Shown here one piece after another: positions 54,739 to 63,632 of a DNA stretch of 64,000 nucleotides; position 1 is the stretch's first letter, and each line of letters begins with the position of its first letter. Location: the NCBI GenBank assembly GCA_020891255.1, contig BQFW01000011.1, positions 1,860,001-1,924,000 on the forward strand. The letters are read 5' to 3'. The translations under genes and the position numbers were made by a program. The stretch is from Entomortierella parvispora E1425. Taxonomy: Eukaryota > Fungi > Mortierellomycota. The notes beneath the pieces were generated by a model, which saw nothing but the letters and a program-made list of their open reading frames with translations, did no database searches and was not told where the DNA came from.

Positions 54739-55929
54739 ATGTTGCGCACCATCACCCCCCGTAATGCCCGTGTGAAGCGTGTCCTCAAGAACAGAGAGGC
54801 CAAGACCGAGGAGAACGTCAAGACTGCCATCTTTATTCGTGGAAGTCAGACCAGCCAGGTCGTCAACGATGCCCTCGCCGACCTTGTATGTTCAATGGCA
54901 TTTCAATGTCTTTGCATTTCCTTTCGTTCATTCTGATGGTCTATTTCAGTAGACTCTTGGGTCTTATTCTGGGACCGAAGTTGGAAACTATTGCTAACCA
55001 TGTCTCCACTATTTGATTCTTCGATAACTGAAAATAGTACATGCTCAAGAAGCCATATGCCGTCAACTTCACAAAGAAGAACCAGATCCACCCCTTCGAA
55101 GATCAGTCCAACCTCCAGTTTTTCTCACAAAAGAACGATGCCTCGCTCTTTGTCATTGGAACTCACTCCAAGAAGCGCCCCAACACCCTCACTTTTGCCC
55201 GTATGTTTGATCATCAGCTCTTGGACATGATGGAGGTTTCGATCGAGCACGGTGTTCCCATGAGGGACTTCAAGGTACAATCACCTTCTAGGATACTACT
55301 CACAAGAATGCTGGTCATGCGTAATTCATGGCTTTTGATAACTAATATCTGTTCCTGGAAAAAAAAAATAGACTCCCAAGAGCGCCATTGGAATGCGCCC
55401 CTGCTTCATGTTCAACGGAGACATGTGGGATCAGAACACCAACTACATCATGCTCAAGAGCATGTTGCTGGATTTTTACCACGGTCAGACTGTTGACAAG
55501 GTCGCCTTGGCTGGATTGGAGTATGTGATTTCAGTTACTGCAGGACCTATGACCTCGGAAGGAAAGCCAGGAAAGGTCTACTTGCGCACATACACGATCG
55601 TCTTGAAGCGATCCGGTGTCAAGTTGCCCCGCATTGAATTGGTCGAGATGGGACCTAGCATGGACATGACTTTTGGACGTATCACAGAGGCCAAGCCCGA
55701 TGTGTGGAAGCAGTCTCTCAGGGTACCCAAGGAGCTCAAGCCCAAGAAGAAGAAGAACATTACCAAGGACGACATGAACAACACTGTGGGCCGCATCCAC
55801 TTGGGCAAGCAGGACTTCGACAAGATCCAGACCCGCAAGATGAAGGGATTGAAGAAGCGCTCGGCAGAGGACGAGGATTCGGCCAAGGAGAAGAAGCAGC
55901 GCATGGATGCAAGCGACGACGAGGAGTAA
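54739..55929 (+). CDS. RPF2: Ribosome biogenesis Brix-domain protein Rpf2, multi-exon
   Basis: PRNARVKRVLKNREAK, HPFED, FFSQKNDASLFV, HSKKRPNTL, PRIELVEMGPSMD, GRIHLGKQD..QTRKMKGLK. Confidence 0.96.
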
Positions 55930-56190
55930 AAAAGACCCTGTTTGCTCGAATCCCTTCGTTTGTTACATTACTTTCTTTGCATCCTCCCCTTCTTTCTAGT
56001 TACCTCGTTCATGACAGATTTTACCATTCACTTTTGCATATAAAATAACGACTACCCCGCACCGAGCTATTCTCACTGTAGAATGCATGATTTGTATGAG
56101 CATAGAGTGCAAAACCCGGCGATCTTTGGCCCATTTCGTGCCTGTGCCCAACGGACTTTGCGTTCACCGCTGTGATTTGATCGATCGACG

Positions 56191-56744
56191 TAGTCTCGTC
56201 ACCATCCCCTCCGCCGGTTCACAGGAGAGTCACAAGTGCTGACGCACCTGCCTTTTTAGGCAGCTCTCACTGAAAACCTCTAGAGGGGCTGGTCGGCAAG
56301 TAAGGTTTCCACTATGACCCTGCAGAGCTCTGTCAAAAAAATAACGGCAAAGTCGAAAAACAGCTCAGTTTTGCTCATCCTCCCTTCATCATTCACCTCA
56401 TCTCGCACCATTAATCTATGGTCGCCTTGCCATTCCACTCCCATTCCCCTCCCATTCCCCTGTTTCCATCGCAATCTTCCACTCTCAGTGCGTTCTCGCT
56501 CTCTTGACGACCTTCATACAAAGCGCCTCCGCCGTTCCCCGTCTCTCAGGTTATTTGTTTTCGCTGAGAAAAGTGCTCCAGGTACGCCTTCATGGACACG
56601 AATATATGAACTAGCACGCTCTGGCCATGGAAACTAACAGCTATTCCCTCTTCTACACCAAAAGCCCAGTCCTCAATTGATCCCCCCCGCTCTTCAATTG
56701 ATCCCTCCGTCCTCATATCCCGTCCAATTGGTATCACGCTAGTA
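56191..56744 (+). repeat. Left terminal inverted repeat (554 bp)
   Basis: Reverse complement of 61887-62440. No mismatch seen in the stretches compared, and the spurious ORFs in the two copies translate identically. Confidence 0.95.
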
Positions 56745-58360
56745 TGCCTCCTTTGTCTGATACTGATCGCGTCATAAGTGTCTGCGAAGACAAACTCGGC
56801 GTCATCCCCAAGCCCGAGCAATTGGACGTTCTCCGATCCATTATTGATCGGAGAGATTGCGTCTTAATTGCCCCCACAGGTTGGGGAAAAACTCTGGCCT
56901 TCACTCTTCCACTATTTCTGTGGAGTGACGCTGCCATCCTTGTAATAACACCTCTTAAGGCTCTTGGCATCGAACAAAGAGACAAGCTCAAGAATCTCAA
57001 CATCGAATGTGTCAGTATCACGGAGGATGATAAGGATATCAACGCCTCCAAAGTCCTCCAAGGTGGATATCGGGCAATTTTTCTATCTCCAGAGATGCTT
57101 CTTGAATCCAAACGATTAAAGGGTCTTTGGGAAAACAGCAAATGGGCTGAAAGCATACGCGCTGTTGTTGTTGATGAAGCCCATTGCATCCACGCCTGGG
57201 GATCGTCATTTCGCCACGCTTTTGGGGAGCTTGCTAAGTTGCGCTACAGGCTAAACAATCGAGCACCTTTCATAGCTGCCTCGGCTACACTTCCCAGATC
57301 AATTTTGAAGACTACAATACTATCACTGGACATGATGAACCCGACTATCATCAACATCGGTAACGATCGACCCAATATCATGTACAAGGTCACTTCATTT
57401 AAGGAGGCCGTATCATCATTTAAAGATCTCCTTTTCTTGAAGGACAAGGCCAAGACCATCGTTTATTTCGACAACCGGGATTTAGCAGAGCAAGCTGGAC
57501 ACCTTCTACGCACTTGGTTCGGCCAAGAACAAGTTCGGGTGTATCATGGTTTCAAAACCGATGATCTCAAGAATCGTCGCATGAAGGAGTTCCGTGAAGG
57601 CAAATATCCTATTTTGCTAGCAACGGAAGCCGCAGGTATGGGATGTGACATTAGGGATATCGCTCGTGTTGTCCAGTATGGCTACCCTCGGGATATAAAT
57701 TGTCTTTTTCAGCGATTTGGACGAGCTGCAAGGGACGGCACAATCCAAGGATACGGTATATTTTTGGTCCCAAAATCGGCACCAAAAGTTACCCCCAAAA
57801 AAAAAGATCCCGTTCAGCAAGATCTTAAAGACCTTATTGACCTAGCGAACTCTCCTGGATGTATCCGAAAGTATTTTAACGATTACTACGGGAACGAGCA
57901 CGTCCCAGTTACGGACGTGTGCTGCAATATCTGCAATCCGGATGAAGCTGATGACAAGGACGAGTCGTCAACAATTCAGCCAGCAGACAAGGCATCGAAA
58001 CGAGAGAAATGGGATAAGAATGAGGCGGAACAAGTCCGGAATGCGCTGATAGTATGGAGGGATAATATGTATGACTTGCACTTTAAGGGCCGCATGCACG
58101 ACACAGAACAAACGGTCATGACCGACTACATGTTAAACAAGACCGTCAAGAAGTACAAGAGTATAATTGCTGCCAGATCAATCGACATGCTATACTGGGA
58201 CCCACTGAATGAAACATATCCAAGCCAGGTGCTAGAGATCATCATGGGTTTGGGCAAGCAATTCTTGGAGGAGAAGGACGAGAAGGAAAAAAAAATCGCC
58301 AAGAAAAGGAGCGACGGCGGCAATTTGGAATGGCCCCATCTTTTCAAATTCCTCCTTTGA
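56744..58360 (+). CDS. Transposon-encoded RecQ-like SF2 helicase; probably extends to 58776 via a frameshift
   Basis: APTGWGKT, VVVDEAHCI, ASATL, LATEAAGMGCD, QRFGRAARDG, and the Zn-binding C..CCNIC module. Confidence 0.92.
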   Translation: MPPLSDTDRVISVCEDKLGVIPKPEQLDVLRSIIDRRDCVLIAPTGWGKTLAFTLPLFLWSDAAILVITPLKALGIEQRDKLKNLNIECVSITEDDKDINASKVLQGGYRAIFLSPEMLLESKRLKGLWENSKWAESIRAVVVDEAHCIHAWGSSFRHAFGELAKLRYRLNNRAPFIAASATLPRSILKTTILSLDMMNPTIINIGNDRPNIMYKVTSFKEAVSSFKDLLFLKDKAKTIVYFDNRDLAEQAGHLLRTWFGQEQVRVYHGFKTDDLKNRRMKEFREGKYPILLATEAAGMGCDIRDIARVVQYGYPRDINCLFQRFGRAARDGTIQGYGIFLVPKSAPKVTPKKKDPVQQDLKDLIDLANSPGCIRKYFNDYYGNEHVPVTDVCCNICNPDEADDKDESSTIQPADKASKREKWDKNEAEQVRNALIVWRDNMYDLHFKGRMHDTEQTVMTDYMLNKTVKKYKSIIAARSIDMLYWDPLNETYPSQVLEIIMGLGKQFLEEKDEKEKKIAKKRSDGGNLEWPHLFKFLL

Positions 58361-59357
58361 TCAGTGCCACAACGGATCAGCAGGAAATGCAAGTCGTTTC
58401 CACAGCCAGTCGCGACCAGCAACAGTCAGACCAACTAATAAGTGAAGATGAAATGGAGATTCATTCGCTGCAGGACGGCTATGGCCAGCGGCAGATTGAT
58501 CAAAACCTTCCACCGCAACAAGTCAAGGAAAGCAAAAATCTCACGCAATTGCTGCTTAAACCCCCGAAAACACCTCCAAAAAAAACGAAGGCGATACGAA
58601 AAAAGGGAGGAACAGCAACAGAGAACAACCCTTCGTCTAAACAAAAGGAACTCAAGGTAATCCAATATTTTCTTCCGCCATCACCACAGAGAAGCAATCA
58701 AGTTCAAGACAATACTTCCACGCCTCCTACAATATCAATTATTCAACATTTCGGCCCCTCTGCTCTGAAGCGGTGACAACTATAACAGCACTTCAAATAG
58801 AAATAAAAAAACCTCGCTCATGAAAGTCGAGGAGGTGGAGGTATACTACCGGCAGCCTGCACAAACGTTGCAGTTGGGCAAGGGGACTGGGACTGGGCGA
58901 AAAAGAGAACCGGTGCACTGCGTCTCTCAAAAGAAAAAAAGCCAGTGCGCCGAACTGGTTCACTGCTCTCACTCAATTTTTTTTCTTCATTTTTTCCCTG
59001 GACCAATTTATTGAGGCTGAGAAGGGTCGAAACAAGAAAACAGAGACCTCAAAGAGTAGTATGAGAAAACAATGTCACCAACACCAGTGACATCCCTTGG
59101 AGGATTGGAAGCAAAAGAGAGGAGAGGGATCTGTATTTCAGCTCAGGCTGCGTACGATCAAAGCAATGGACCGAGAAAAATTTCCGGAAAAAAAAAATCA
59201 CTAGAACCACGGTTCCAAAAATGTGCGCCGACCTCGAAAAAAAATGAGAACCGAAGTACACCACAGAGTGGTCCCAATCCAATGGACAGATACTTGTCGG
59301 CAGGGGCGCCGTGTGGCTCTGCGGTTAGATGTACATTGCAGGGAGGTGCTGCTTTAT

Positions 59358-61785
59358 TTAACAAAAGTTATTTTCAACGAACTCGTCCAGGTCGAATTGT
59401 GAGATGTCGAATTCAGGAAACTCTAGTGCTTCATCATCAGCAATTGTAGGGCGTTCCTCGTCCATCTCAGCATCTTCCTCCTCCTCCTCCATCTCGACAT
59501 CCATCTCACCAGCGTCTTCATTACAATAGCGACCACAGCATTTCTTGAAAACAGCAATTCGACGCTTATCTACAATATTATTGCGTCCCTCTGCCAAAAG
59601 ATCTCTCACAGCAGGAACCACAAGATCAGGAGATATATCGTCATGCGTGAAAAAGCCAGCCTCGATGCACCGCTGCTTAATTATATCGATGTCCGCCACA
59701 GAGGATGGAGCTGAGTGGTTGGTTCCACAATGAGGCGTTTTGAACATTTTCTCGACCGTCCTCGCAATCTCCTGGAACGTGCGAACGTTTGGCGCAATTT
59801 TTTTCTCTAAAATACCCCAGTTCAGATTGCTGGACTTTTGCCGCGTGTCTGATTTTTGTAAGAAGATTGTTGTGCTCTTGATAAAGGTCGGTGGGTATCC
59901 ATCTGTTTGGTTGTCCAGTAGTATTAACTAGCATCGAGGATAATATGGTATTCCTATCCTCTGTCTTCCAAGAATAAAAGAGGCCACAGTGAAGTCGTAG
60001 AAGCTCATTTGCGTAGTTTCTATTGCCTCCAGCTTGAAAGGTCAAGGTAAGCCATCGGATCATCTCCAGAATTCGCCCTATATCCCCTGCTTTGATCGCT
60101 GATCCCAGCTCAATGTAGAACAGCATGTCCCGAATGAACAACGCGGCGTTGACTGACTGCTGATTTGCCATGCCACCAAGGCCTGTTGCTGTCAAATATT
60201 GGCCGATGATACCGTCAACCTTATCCATGACATCCATTGATGAGTGAGGCATCTGTCCGGAGGACTTGCTGGACAATTCCTCTTCACTCTTGAGCTTGAT
60301 TTCCCAAATGAGCAAGACTATGGCATCAAAAACATGGCGAAGAAATTCATCAAGATCATGGAAACTAGACTTGTCTGGGCTGATCCGCTTTTTTTCCAAG
60401 GCCGCGACGAAGGAGCTGAGCGATCCAGGTGTTGTTCGAGTGCCCCAGTGCGTCTTCAAAATTGTTGATGCCAGAACCATCTGAAGATGAAAAAGTTGAA
60501 GGACAGGGATTGCCCATTCCACACGGTAGTACGCCAAGTCCTCATCCCATCGTAATCTTGCTACACTTCGTATTCTGGCCAAGGTGAGTTGATCTCCTGC
60601 AACAACAAGACGCGTCTGATCAAAGAAAGTCTCTGGCGAAAGCTGAAGCACCTTCATGATCTTGTCAAGAATATCCCTGTTGCCTTCCACGGTTGACTGG
60701 TCAATGTGCATGGATGGAAGTGGGTAAGCTTTGGTTCTCTCCACTTTGAGTTTGTTCTTGACTGGCTCAGGAATAGGGTTTTTGAGAGATATGGTTCCTC
60801 GTCTTCGCAGCGCCTCAATCAGATGATAACGGTATGTTTCCTTCAAATGACTGTCCTGTTCTTTGGAGGGGTACAAATCGGAGGCACGTATATGCCTCGT
60901 GGCATCTTGCACCCCTTCAACAGCAGGCATCTCAGAAGTGAGAATTGCCGTCGCTGTGGCACCATTTTCGAATGAATCTTTGTTTGTCGTTCTCTGATTG
61001 TAGCGCCGAAATGCCATGTTGATGTTATCGTACACAATCATGAACGGTTGTTTCCTGTCCTTCAAAATTGACTGGATTTTTTCTAAATGTGCCGTGGTCA
61101 GATGATCCAAGCCCTCCATAATCCAGTCAAAGCTATTGCTGAGTCCAGCTCTTTGGAGAACACTGACCAACGACTTTGTAGCACCCTGGCTATAAAAGTA
61201 GAGACTGAAGATACCTTGGAGGAAATTTGCCCGTCTATTCCACGTCCTGAGGACGACACTGGCGACTACAGGGACGGCGGGGATTTCTGGTTCGAAAGGT
61301 GAAAGCCTCTTGTCGTTTATGAGACCACGCAGCAAGGCTAGGGATATGGGGGCATGCCCCTCCATTTCTCGCAGGATATTTTCGAGGCGGAACTGTTCCA
61401 GAGCTTCCCCGGTTACTGCAGTGGCAGGGAGCCCAATATTCATGGTATGGCTGGCTCGTTCGATTTCTGGCCGTGCGAACTTCAGCACGAAATCCATGGC
61501 AGAAGTCAATAGAGTTTTAGAATGGTCCTTCTTGATGCTGTCCTTCCAGATATCGAAGCAACGGGCGGGGCATCCATGTGCGAGGAAGTGATCAACTTTT
61601 CTTTTCACCACAATGTCATCTGAATTGAGACAGGCTTCAATGAACGAACCAAACGAAAGCCCGCAATCTCTGATATACTCTAGAATAGCAACGAGATTTT
61701 TGCCTTGGTCCTCAGAGACAGGCCTCTCCTTTGGTTGTTTGACCCACTGGCTTCGGGGAATGCGACGATGAAGAGATGTGACCAT
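59358..61785 (-). CDS. Academ transposase (DUF6589-like) with an apparent frameshift near 59835
   Basis: IVYDNINM, HIDQSTVEG, VAGDQLT, LFHLQM, IPTDLYQEHNN. The C-terminal part (SSNLNWGILEKKIAPNVRTF...GTNHSAP) continues in another frame to 59358. Confidence 0.85.
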
Positions 61786-61886
61786 ATTTTTTTTCGTGGG
61801 GGGGGGGGCTGTCAACAGGACGGGAGAACTGATATCGGCCGTTAGAACAATGATTTTTTCATCAAACGCGAAAAAATCGCGAACTT

Positions 61887-62440
61887 TACTAGCGTGATAC
61901 CAATTGGACGGGATATGAGGACGGAGGGATCAATTGAAGAGCGGGGGGGATCAATTGAGGACTGGGCTTTTGGTGTAGAAGAGGGAATAGCTGTTAGTTT
62001 CCATGGCCAGAGCGTGCTAGTTCATATATTCGTGTCCATGAAGGCGTACCTGGAGCACTTTTCTCAGCGAAAACAAATAACCTGAGAGACGGGGAACGGC
62101 GGAGGCGCTTTGTATGAAGGTCGTCAAGAGAGCGAGAACGCACTGAGAGTGGAAGATTGCGATGGAAACAGGGGAATGGGAGGGGAATGGGAGTGGAATG
62201 GCAAGGCGACCATAGATTAATGGTGCGAGATGAGGTGAATGATGAAGGGAGGATGAGCAAAACTGAGCTGTTTTTCGACTTTGCCGTTATTTTTTTGACA
62301 GAGCTCTGCAGGGTCATAGTGGAAACCTTACTTGCCGACCAGCCCCTCTAGAGGTTTTCAGTGAGAGCTGCCTAAAAAGGCAGGTGCGTCAGCACTTGTG
62401 ACTCTCCTGTGAACCGGCGGAGGGGATGGTGACGAGACTA
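61887..62440 (-). repeat. Right terminal inverted repeat (554 bp)
   Basis: Reverse complement of 56191-56744. Confidence 0.95.
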
Positions 62441-62588
62441 CGATCGACGGCCGTTTTTGGGTTTCTGCGCTTTGGTCACCCACGACCGGCTCGGGGTCTT
62501 TCTTGCCCTGTACTGCCACCCTCCAGCTTGATTCCGTTTTTCTTTGTCTCTTCATTCCCTCATTCCCTCCATCTACCTTCACCGTACC

Positions 62589-63632
62589 ATGTCCCTTGCA
62601 ATCTCAAAAAAGGGCTCTACCCCTCCAGGACCCTACAAAGCTGTGTTCTTTGACATTGGTGGAGTCGTCGTCGGTTCGCCATTCCAAGGCATTGCTGAGT
62701 TTGAGCGTGAACACAACCTGCCGCCCAACTACTTGAACGTCGCCATGTAAGACGAATCCTAGGCGACTCTTTCTTCCAAAGGCAACAATGATTATAGATG
62801 CGCGTGCCTTCTAACCTAACAGGTCTTTCCACACCTAGTTCACGATCTGGACCAAAAGGTGCCTTCCAAAGGTTGGAGCGTGGAGAGATTGATCTGTGGG
62901 AGTTTTACGGTGCTTTCTCCGAACAGTTGTCAAACCCTTTGAACGTCTCGGCCTACTCGAAATACGCCGAAATGAGAGGGAAAAGTAAGACAATGTTGCG
63001 CTGAAAGCCTCTGCATTGACTGTATTTTGTTTCCGCTTCCTAATACTGGTTTGTATTGCCCTGAAGCAGCCTTTGATCGGGCTTCGTTCAAAGCACCAAA
63101 GGTCGATGGTCGAGCGTTATTCCACCAGATGATGGGAAAAGCCGCGATTGTGAACCAAAGCATGGTCCAAGCCATCGCACTGCTGGCAGATGCCGGATAC
63201 ACGGTGGTAGCGTTGACAAATAACTTCCACTATCCCTCAGACGAACGCGGAAGACAGGAGCAGGAACTGATCCTGCAGGTTACCGCCAAAACTTTGGCCG
63301 CCTCTTCCGACCCGCAATCGCCAGCTTCTTCATCTGGACCATTGGTCATGGGACAAGATCAACTGAAGACCATCTTCCATCATTTTCTCGAGTCTGCGAT
63401 TATGGGATTACGGAAACCGGACCCAGCTATCTACAAGAAGGCATGTGAAGTTGTTGGAGTAGAGCCTTCACAAGTTGTGTTTTTGGACGACATTGGAGCC
63501 AATTTAAAGTCGGCTCAGGACGTTGGCTACAAGACCATCCGAGTTGAATTGGGAAAGCCAGAGAAGGCTATCAAAGAATTAGAGCAGATTCTAGGAAACG
63601 GAATCAAGTTGACCCCTGCACCCAAGTTATAG
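62589..63632 (+). CDS. HAD-superfamily hydrolase (ACAD10 / soluble epoxide hydrolase N-terminal-like), multi-exon
   Basis: KAVFFDIGGVVVGSP, ALTNNF, ESAIMGLRKPDPAIY, VFLDDIGANLKSA. Confidence 0.92.

Follow-up and report, generated by a model that had tools for sequence, protein, structure and literature searches.

Why a cut-and-paste DNA transposon should need a RecQ-type helicase of its own is, to our knowledge, unexplained, and the lineage in which such a helicase is described, AcademH of the Academ superfamily (reportedly distinguished by Kojima in 2020), is one that we know only as described and experimentally untouched. The question is raised here by a locus in the fungus Entomortierella parvispora E1425 (Mortierellaceae, Mucoromycota; genome of 38.9 Mb, with all E. 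parvispora proteins coming from a single NCBI assembly). The window analyzed is a stretch of 64,000 nucleotides of contig BQFW01000011.1 (positions 1,860,001 to 1,924,000 of the forward strand), and coordinates without a contig name are those of the window. Positions 56191–62440 are very probably one copy of a very young E. parvispora family of DNA transposons in the helicase-encoding lineage, AcademH.

The element was delimited by a repeat search of the window and by direct reading of its ends. Inverted arms at 56189–56744 and 61887–62442 span 556 nt and are 100% complementary; because two bases of each arm are the self-complementary CG of the target-site duplication (TSD), the true terminal inverted repeats (TIRs) measure 554 bp, at 56191–56744 (+) and 61887–62440 (−), and bound an element of 6,250 bp with TAG...CTA ends. 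Reading across the left junction, ...GATTTGAT is followed by CGATCGACG (56182–56190) and then by the element, which begins TAGTCTCG; at the right, the element finishes CGAGACTA, followed by the same CGATCGACG (62441–62449) and GCCGTTTT..., such that the insertion is flanked by an exact 9-bp TSD. Chance cannot account for a perfect inverted repeat of 554 bp flanked by a 9-bp duplication. Within each TIR, the repeat search detected two tandem 21-bp repeats, each with a CAATTG core (56665–56706, +; mirrored at 61923–61964), which are candidate protein-binding sites. A first-pass annotation, made from the letters of the window, had given the same length, termini, TSD, and mismatch-free 554-bp TIRs, and each of these figures proved correct; it had also stated that many mismatches between the TIRs would speak against its reading, and alignment of the arms shows none. 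Its facing RecQ helicase and transposase genes were likewise recovered, as an open reading frame (ORF) with DEAD and Helicase_C domains on the plus strand opposite an ORF matching Pfam DUF6589 on the minus strand. Its description of the element as near-complete holds for the ends, TIRs, TSD, and presence of both genes but not for the transposase frame, which is broken at 59836–59839 as assembled. The palindrome CGATCG that it pointed out in the target is present at this insertion and peculiar to it, the other seven target sites being nonpalindromic; a palindromic target preference was accordingly rejected, CGATCG occurring at the window insertion alone among the target sites compared.

Seven full-length copies were recovered from the genome, on six contigs, with the same ends at different loci and an inter-copy identity of 99.9% or more. 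Their alignment shows substitutions at 4 sites and one-base indels at ∼19, of which 17 fall in homopolymer runs. Six of the seven, including the window copy, are flanked by perfect 9-bp TSDs, all different in sequence and lying in unrelated targets, while copy L006 has a 7-bp TSD. The same genome search, which the first-pass annotation had proposed as a check, yielded one nonautonomous derivative of 621 bp (contig 11:93627–94247; L023:1501–2121), composed of TIR sequence only, the first 226 bp of the element being joined to the last 396 bp. Since this derivative is flanked by its own 8-bp duplication (GCTGGTCG), nonautonomous mobilization has occurred; shorter TIR fragments are present elsewhere in the genome. 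The near-identity of seven copies with TSDs of their own, together with the mobilized derivative, indicates recent movement. Recent transposition had initially been proposed from the matching TIRs and intact TSD; the conclusion stands on the copies and the derivative, whereas TIR identity is the weaker ground, because cut-and-paste transposition does not regenerate TIRs as retrotransposition regenerates long terminal repeats. Five of the eight target duplications (L001–L007 and L023) contain GAT on either strand, and GATT(T)G occurs in several flanks; this is a weak, post hoc hint of target bias, on too few sites to judge.

To which type of transposase does the minus-strand gene belong? The ORF at 59677–61815 (−) matches DUF6589 with an E value of 9e-91. 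Its 5′ part, from an ATG at 61785, comprises 702 codons as assembled (59677–61785, −), and the remaining 3′ part, corresponding to residues ∼651–808, lies out of frame with it in the window copy (59358–59835, −). Copy L002 alone contains an uninterrupted transposase ORF of 808 residues (L002:4673–7096, −), and in other Mortierellaceae each homologue is one unbroken ORF of 800–808 residues. In an alignment of 18 transposase sequences, D253, D398, E637, and K644 are invariant, and all four candidate catalytic positions fall within the 5′ part. An AlphaFold (AF2) model of the transposase (predicted local distance difference test score 75, predicted template modeling score 0.73) exhibits the topology β1-β2-β3-α-β4-α-β5, in which D253 is placed on strand 1, D398 just past strand 4, and E637 on the helix following a long helical insertion; an RNase H-like fold with three invariant acidic residues in canonical positions is therefore found in the combination of model and alignment. 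Structural comparison with VIA-align gave Z scores of 11.2 for Hermes (model residues 210–670 on chain residues 135–604), 10.4 for the P element, 8 for ISCth4, and ∼7 for RAG1/Transib, and at the ends of the Hermes alignment D253 falls close to D180 and E637 close to E572, a residue mapping that is approximate. A near-invariant Q430 and an invariant H433 (QLFH) follow soon after the fifth strand and may correspond to the C/DxxH motif that hAT, P, MuDR, and Kolobok transposases carry at approximately this place. As judged from the model, the DUF6589 protein is a DDE transposase with an RNase H-like core and a large helical insertion, of the hAT/P-element/RAG/Transib structural type. The closest solved folds, Hermes (hAT) and the P element, share this split DDE core, but the window transposase is only ∼10% identical to them and lacks hAT and P Pfam domains, its element produces 9-bp rather than 8-bp TSDs, and hAT and P elements have no helicase partner. 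The Pfam DUF6589 model covers only residues 297–690 of the 808-residue protein and, because it begins at residue 297, misses the first candidate aspartate, D253 (in VYDNINM).

Two further observations concern the transposase gene. In its 5′ leader, at 61790–61810, a run of 11–13 C and a run of ∼8 A (coding strand) vary in length between copies; either the leader is hypervariable, or no part of the element has been assembled less reliably. An Rfam search gave only a subthreshold match to the C/D-box snoRNA SNORD57, inside the coding region (60000–60068, −; 27.7 bits against a gathering threshold of 47, E 0.014), most likely by chance.

The facing gene, at 56744–58360 (+), encodes 538 residues as assembled, with matches to DEAD and Helicase_C domains. 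Motifs of a RecQ-like superfamily 2 (SF2) helicase are readable along it, including Walker A (GWGKT), DEAH, SAT, QRFGRAARDG with the arginine finger, and the Cys cluster of the RecQ zinc subdomain, for which a weak RecQ_Zn_bind match was obtained (E 0.018). The best solved relatives are WRN, Escherichia coli RecQ, and BLM. The match to TIGR00614 (recQ_fam; E 6e-54) scores 183.6 bits, below the curated cutoff of 219.8 bits, and the domain search of the helicase returned no RQC or HRDC match. By its sequence features, the protein is RecQ-like and probably not an orthologue of a host RecQ, and the gene is predicted to encode a catalytically complete RecQ-type 3′–5′ DNA helicase. The closest homologues are 623–703 residues long, and their alignment continues into an ORF of 148 residues at 58330–58776 (+), conservation being 67–73% over the core and 35–48% identity over this tail. 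The 148-residue ORF was considered as a third gene and rejected as such, the homologues showing it to be the helicase C-terminal tail shifted out of frame. The frame of the window copy departs from that of the homologues at a run of nine A (58287–58295, +); copy L007, with ten A, reads on in frame and is the only one of the seven to do so.

Is the association of these two genes particular to this family? Four other DUF6589 families are present in the same genome, at C9:27499, C7:1586380, C5:494862, and C9:534425 (L031, L056, L042/L050, and L058, respectively), with two to four copies each. They share the host and the facing two-gene layout with the window family, each transposase gene facing a RecQ-like helicase gene, but their transposases are only 34–38% identical to that of the window, marking them as distinct families; in two of the four, a frame change or intron lies near Pfam position 311–319. 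A degenerate DUF6589 copy with stop codons was also found at C2:3966045. Outside this genome, five soil-metagenome contigs at 34–71% identity exhibit the same facing layout, as do most of the distant WLWD01 loci examined, where the aligned C-terminal segment of the transposase is 24–37% identical. The WLWD01 contigs (L076–L139) are from a eukaryote with a G+C fraction of 0.37–0.39 and carry dozens of related elements of ∼6.8 kb with ∼95-bp TIRs and 9-bp TSDs. Among these, 27 complete elements end TAGTCTGGCG...CGCCAGACTA, 21 of them with a perfect 9-bp TSD, and the first five bases, TAGTC, are invariant in the window element and all 27. The 554-bp TIRs of the window element are far longer than the TIRs of these distant relatives. 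Two longer WLWD01 loci, L090 (13.5 kb) and L092 (10 kb), resemble copies with nested insertions. In these elements, the helicase gene thus remains paired tail to tail with the transposase gene across deep divergence.

Conservation of this pairing bears on the possibility that the element is a divergent Mutator-like element (MULE) that acquired a helicase. Its 9-bp TSDs and long TIRs are as in MULEs, and the IS256/Mutator-type transposase of ISCth4 is among the structural matches, but Hermes and the P element outscore ISCth4, and a pairing maintained over such divergence is unlike a recent capture. In addition, hmmscan of the 808-residue protein with E values up to 10 returned DUF6589 alone, with neither PF10551 (MULE) nor any other Pfam family; lacking the PF10551 match, a MULE can be set aside as very improbable.

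AcademH TSDs are 9–10 bp and those of AcademX 3–4 bp (PMC10045372), and 9 bp is the length observed at six of the seven copies, next to the 7 bp of L006 and the 8 bp of the derivative. AcademX presumably shares its transposase superfamily with the window element; in contrast, it combines its short TSDs with an XPG nuclease and no helicase (PMC10045372), whereas the window element encodes a helicase and no XPG domain. KolobokH, the other RecQ-helicase-encoding lineage of fungal DNA transposons, resembles the element in carrying this type of helicase. However, Kolobok transposons have TTAA-specific 4-bp TSDs and 5′-RR...YY-3′ ends (PMC9587614), and the TSDs here are 9 bp of varied sequence, the ends are TAG...CTA, and the helicase has its own gene, on the strand opposite that of the transposase. 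Because TSD length, TSD sequence, and termini all disagree, KolobokH is excluded with near certainty.

With AcademH itself, the window element shares TIR-bounded cut-and-paste organization, here with perfect 554-bp TIRs, a DDE-type transposase, a separate SF2/RecQ-like helicase besides it, the 9-bp TSD, a Mucoromycota host, and low copy number, and no tested feature differs. AcademH occurs in Basidiomycota, Ascomycota, and Mucoromycota (PMC10799480), and Academ is among the few DNA-transposon superfamilies of Mortierella (PMC5751038); searches of the supplements of these two papers returned nothing on DUF6589 or Academ. The AcademH assignment offered by the first-pass annotation is thus supported by the helicase, transposase type, TIRs, TSDs, and host phylum together. 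There is nonetheless a small chance that the DUF6589 and helicase elements constitute a separate, undescribed superfamily that resembles AcademH only in layout and TSD length, because likeness to AcademH is known from descriptions rather than from alignment to a curated Academ transposase; Pfam, moreover, labels DUF6589 a family of unknown function. Such a separate grouping is improbable given that layout, TSD length, and host range agree with published AcademH, that only Academ and Kolobok are named without a Pfam model among the Mortierella superfamilies of PMC5751038, with Kolobok excluded, and that DUF6589 is reported as enriched in rust fungi, where Academ was first found in fungi. In the searches performed here, a homologue profile search reached only Mortierellaceae and one Lactarius protein, and an exhaustive hidden Markov model search gave 7,884 representative proteins, of which the ten named are all from Mortierella or Agaricomycetes and none from rust fungi or animals.

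Several points weigh against assignment of the window element to a young and active AcademH family. Placement of the transposase in Academ is indirect, through the DDE/RNase H fold, the absence of any other superfamily domain, and the occurrence of Academ in Mortierella and rust fungi according to published work. Foldseek by itself gave a weak match (E 3e-3), although its transposase matches are all DDE transposases. D253, D398, and E637 as the candidate catalytic triad and the role of the helicase are both matters that we infer. An exact search of metagenome contigs for the predicted 27-nt unoccupied site returned no match, and neither a second assembly nor transcripts for E. parvispora were found via protein cluster members. 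Finally, the transposase frameshift occurs in six of the seven copies, none of the assembled copies has both genes at full homologue-supported length, and autonomy of a copy is not proven.

The last point depends on whether the frameshifts are real. A run of four T (59836–59839; four A on the coding strand, after ...HAAK) shifts the transposase frame after residue 650 in the window copy and five others, while L002 has three T. As it stands in the assembly, the window copy is not an intact element, its transposase being frameshifted and its helicase lacking the conserved C-terminal tail. An intron bridging the transposase frameshift was considered and rejected, the sole GT...AG pair spanning 29 nt and its removal deleting conserved residues. 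Private substitutions are absent from six of the seven copies, yet most have at least one private one-base indel; because indels without private substitutions are the signature of long-read consensus error in repeats, these private indels look like assembly errors. The A9/A10 site in the helicase is of that kind, while the A3/A4 site in the transposase, common to six copies, is either real or a systematic error. The helicase core of the window copy is open as assembled, and if the transposase frameshift is real, this copy would depend on transposase supplied in trans.

The window copy and L002 share two other run-length states, and with the in-frame orthologues as outgroup, the simplest history would tentatively root the copies on the L002 branch, with the window copy as the nearest relative of L002; this history is read from homopolymer lengths in one assembly. 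A genuine shared frameshift would make the family a natural two-component system, in which a single autonomous master with the open 808-residue ORF very recently mobilized transposase-defective, helicase-competent copies and the 621-bp miniature. This scenario is possible but doubtful; if true, the family would offer donor, helper, and miniature substrates, in compact natural form, for probing the role of the AcademH helicase, together with a TAGTCT end and 9-bp TSD that are conserved where the alignable transposase segment is only 24–37% identical. Another reading, in which the family has lost its autonomy, is unlikely: the A4 frameshift would be real in all copies, the open 808-residue ORF would itself be an assembly error, and recent movement would have been driven by another source of transposase or have stopped. 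The extra base is indeed present in six of seven copies, and the private one-base indels show that the assembly miscounts homopolymers in repeats. However, in at least five related species the orthologue keeps its frame across this site, cross-mobilization is unlikely given that the other DUF6589 families of the genome are only 34–38% identical, and copies so nearly identical imply that movement was very recent.

Between the two genes lies a nested repeat of ∼400 bp (58882–59280) resembling a miniature inverted-repeat transposable element (MITE), which all seven copies contain and which recurs, at 70–84% identity, at 10 or more other loci. Its ends form short inverted repeats (GGGRCTGGGAC...GTCCCAATCCC), and further inverted repeats, of GAACCGGTGCAC, lie inside it. 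An ORF of 125 residues at 59072–59449 lies mostly inside this repeat and was rejected as a gene, which it probably is not. The element itself is inserted between genes, 253 bp from the end (at 55929) of a Brix-domain gene on its left and with a HAD-type hydrolase gene on its right, one exon of which occupies 63027–63632.

Taken together, these features suggest a mechanism. The transposase would recognize the conserved TAGTCT... ends, and perhaps also the CAATTG-containing TIR repeats, excise the element, and attach it to the target at positions offset by 9 bp, the 9-bp duplication arising when this offset is repaired. In its most likely role, the helicase would unwind or process transposon ends or gapped donor or target sites; it may also favor donor-restoring repair, raising copy number. 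From the conserved pairing of the two genes, we infer that the helicase is a required accessory factor rather than cargo. Both genes read inward from identical TIRs, the left TIR constituting the entire upstream region of the helicase gene and the right TIR having its inner end 101 nt upstream of the transposase ATG. Because each TIR abuts or sits within ∼100 nt of a start codon, the two would probably serve as matched promoters.

For Pfam DUF6589, the modeled structure indicates a likely function, as most of the catalytic region of a transposase, and both the TAGTC(T) terminus and the duplication of 9 bp persist over deep divergence. Transposon classification is unchanged, the element falling in a known group, and its value lies chiefly in the experiments that it allows. 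The host is a soil fungus that can be cultured, and the young family, with seven near-identical copies, clean ends and TSDs, and a miniature derivative of natural origin, is a convenient system in which to assay excision and integration with and without the helicase.

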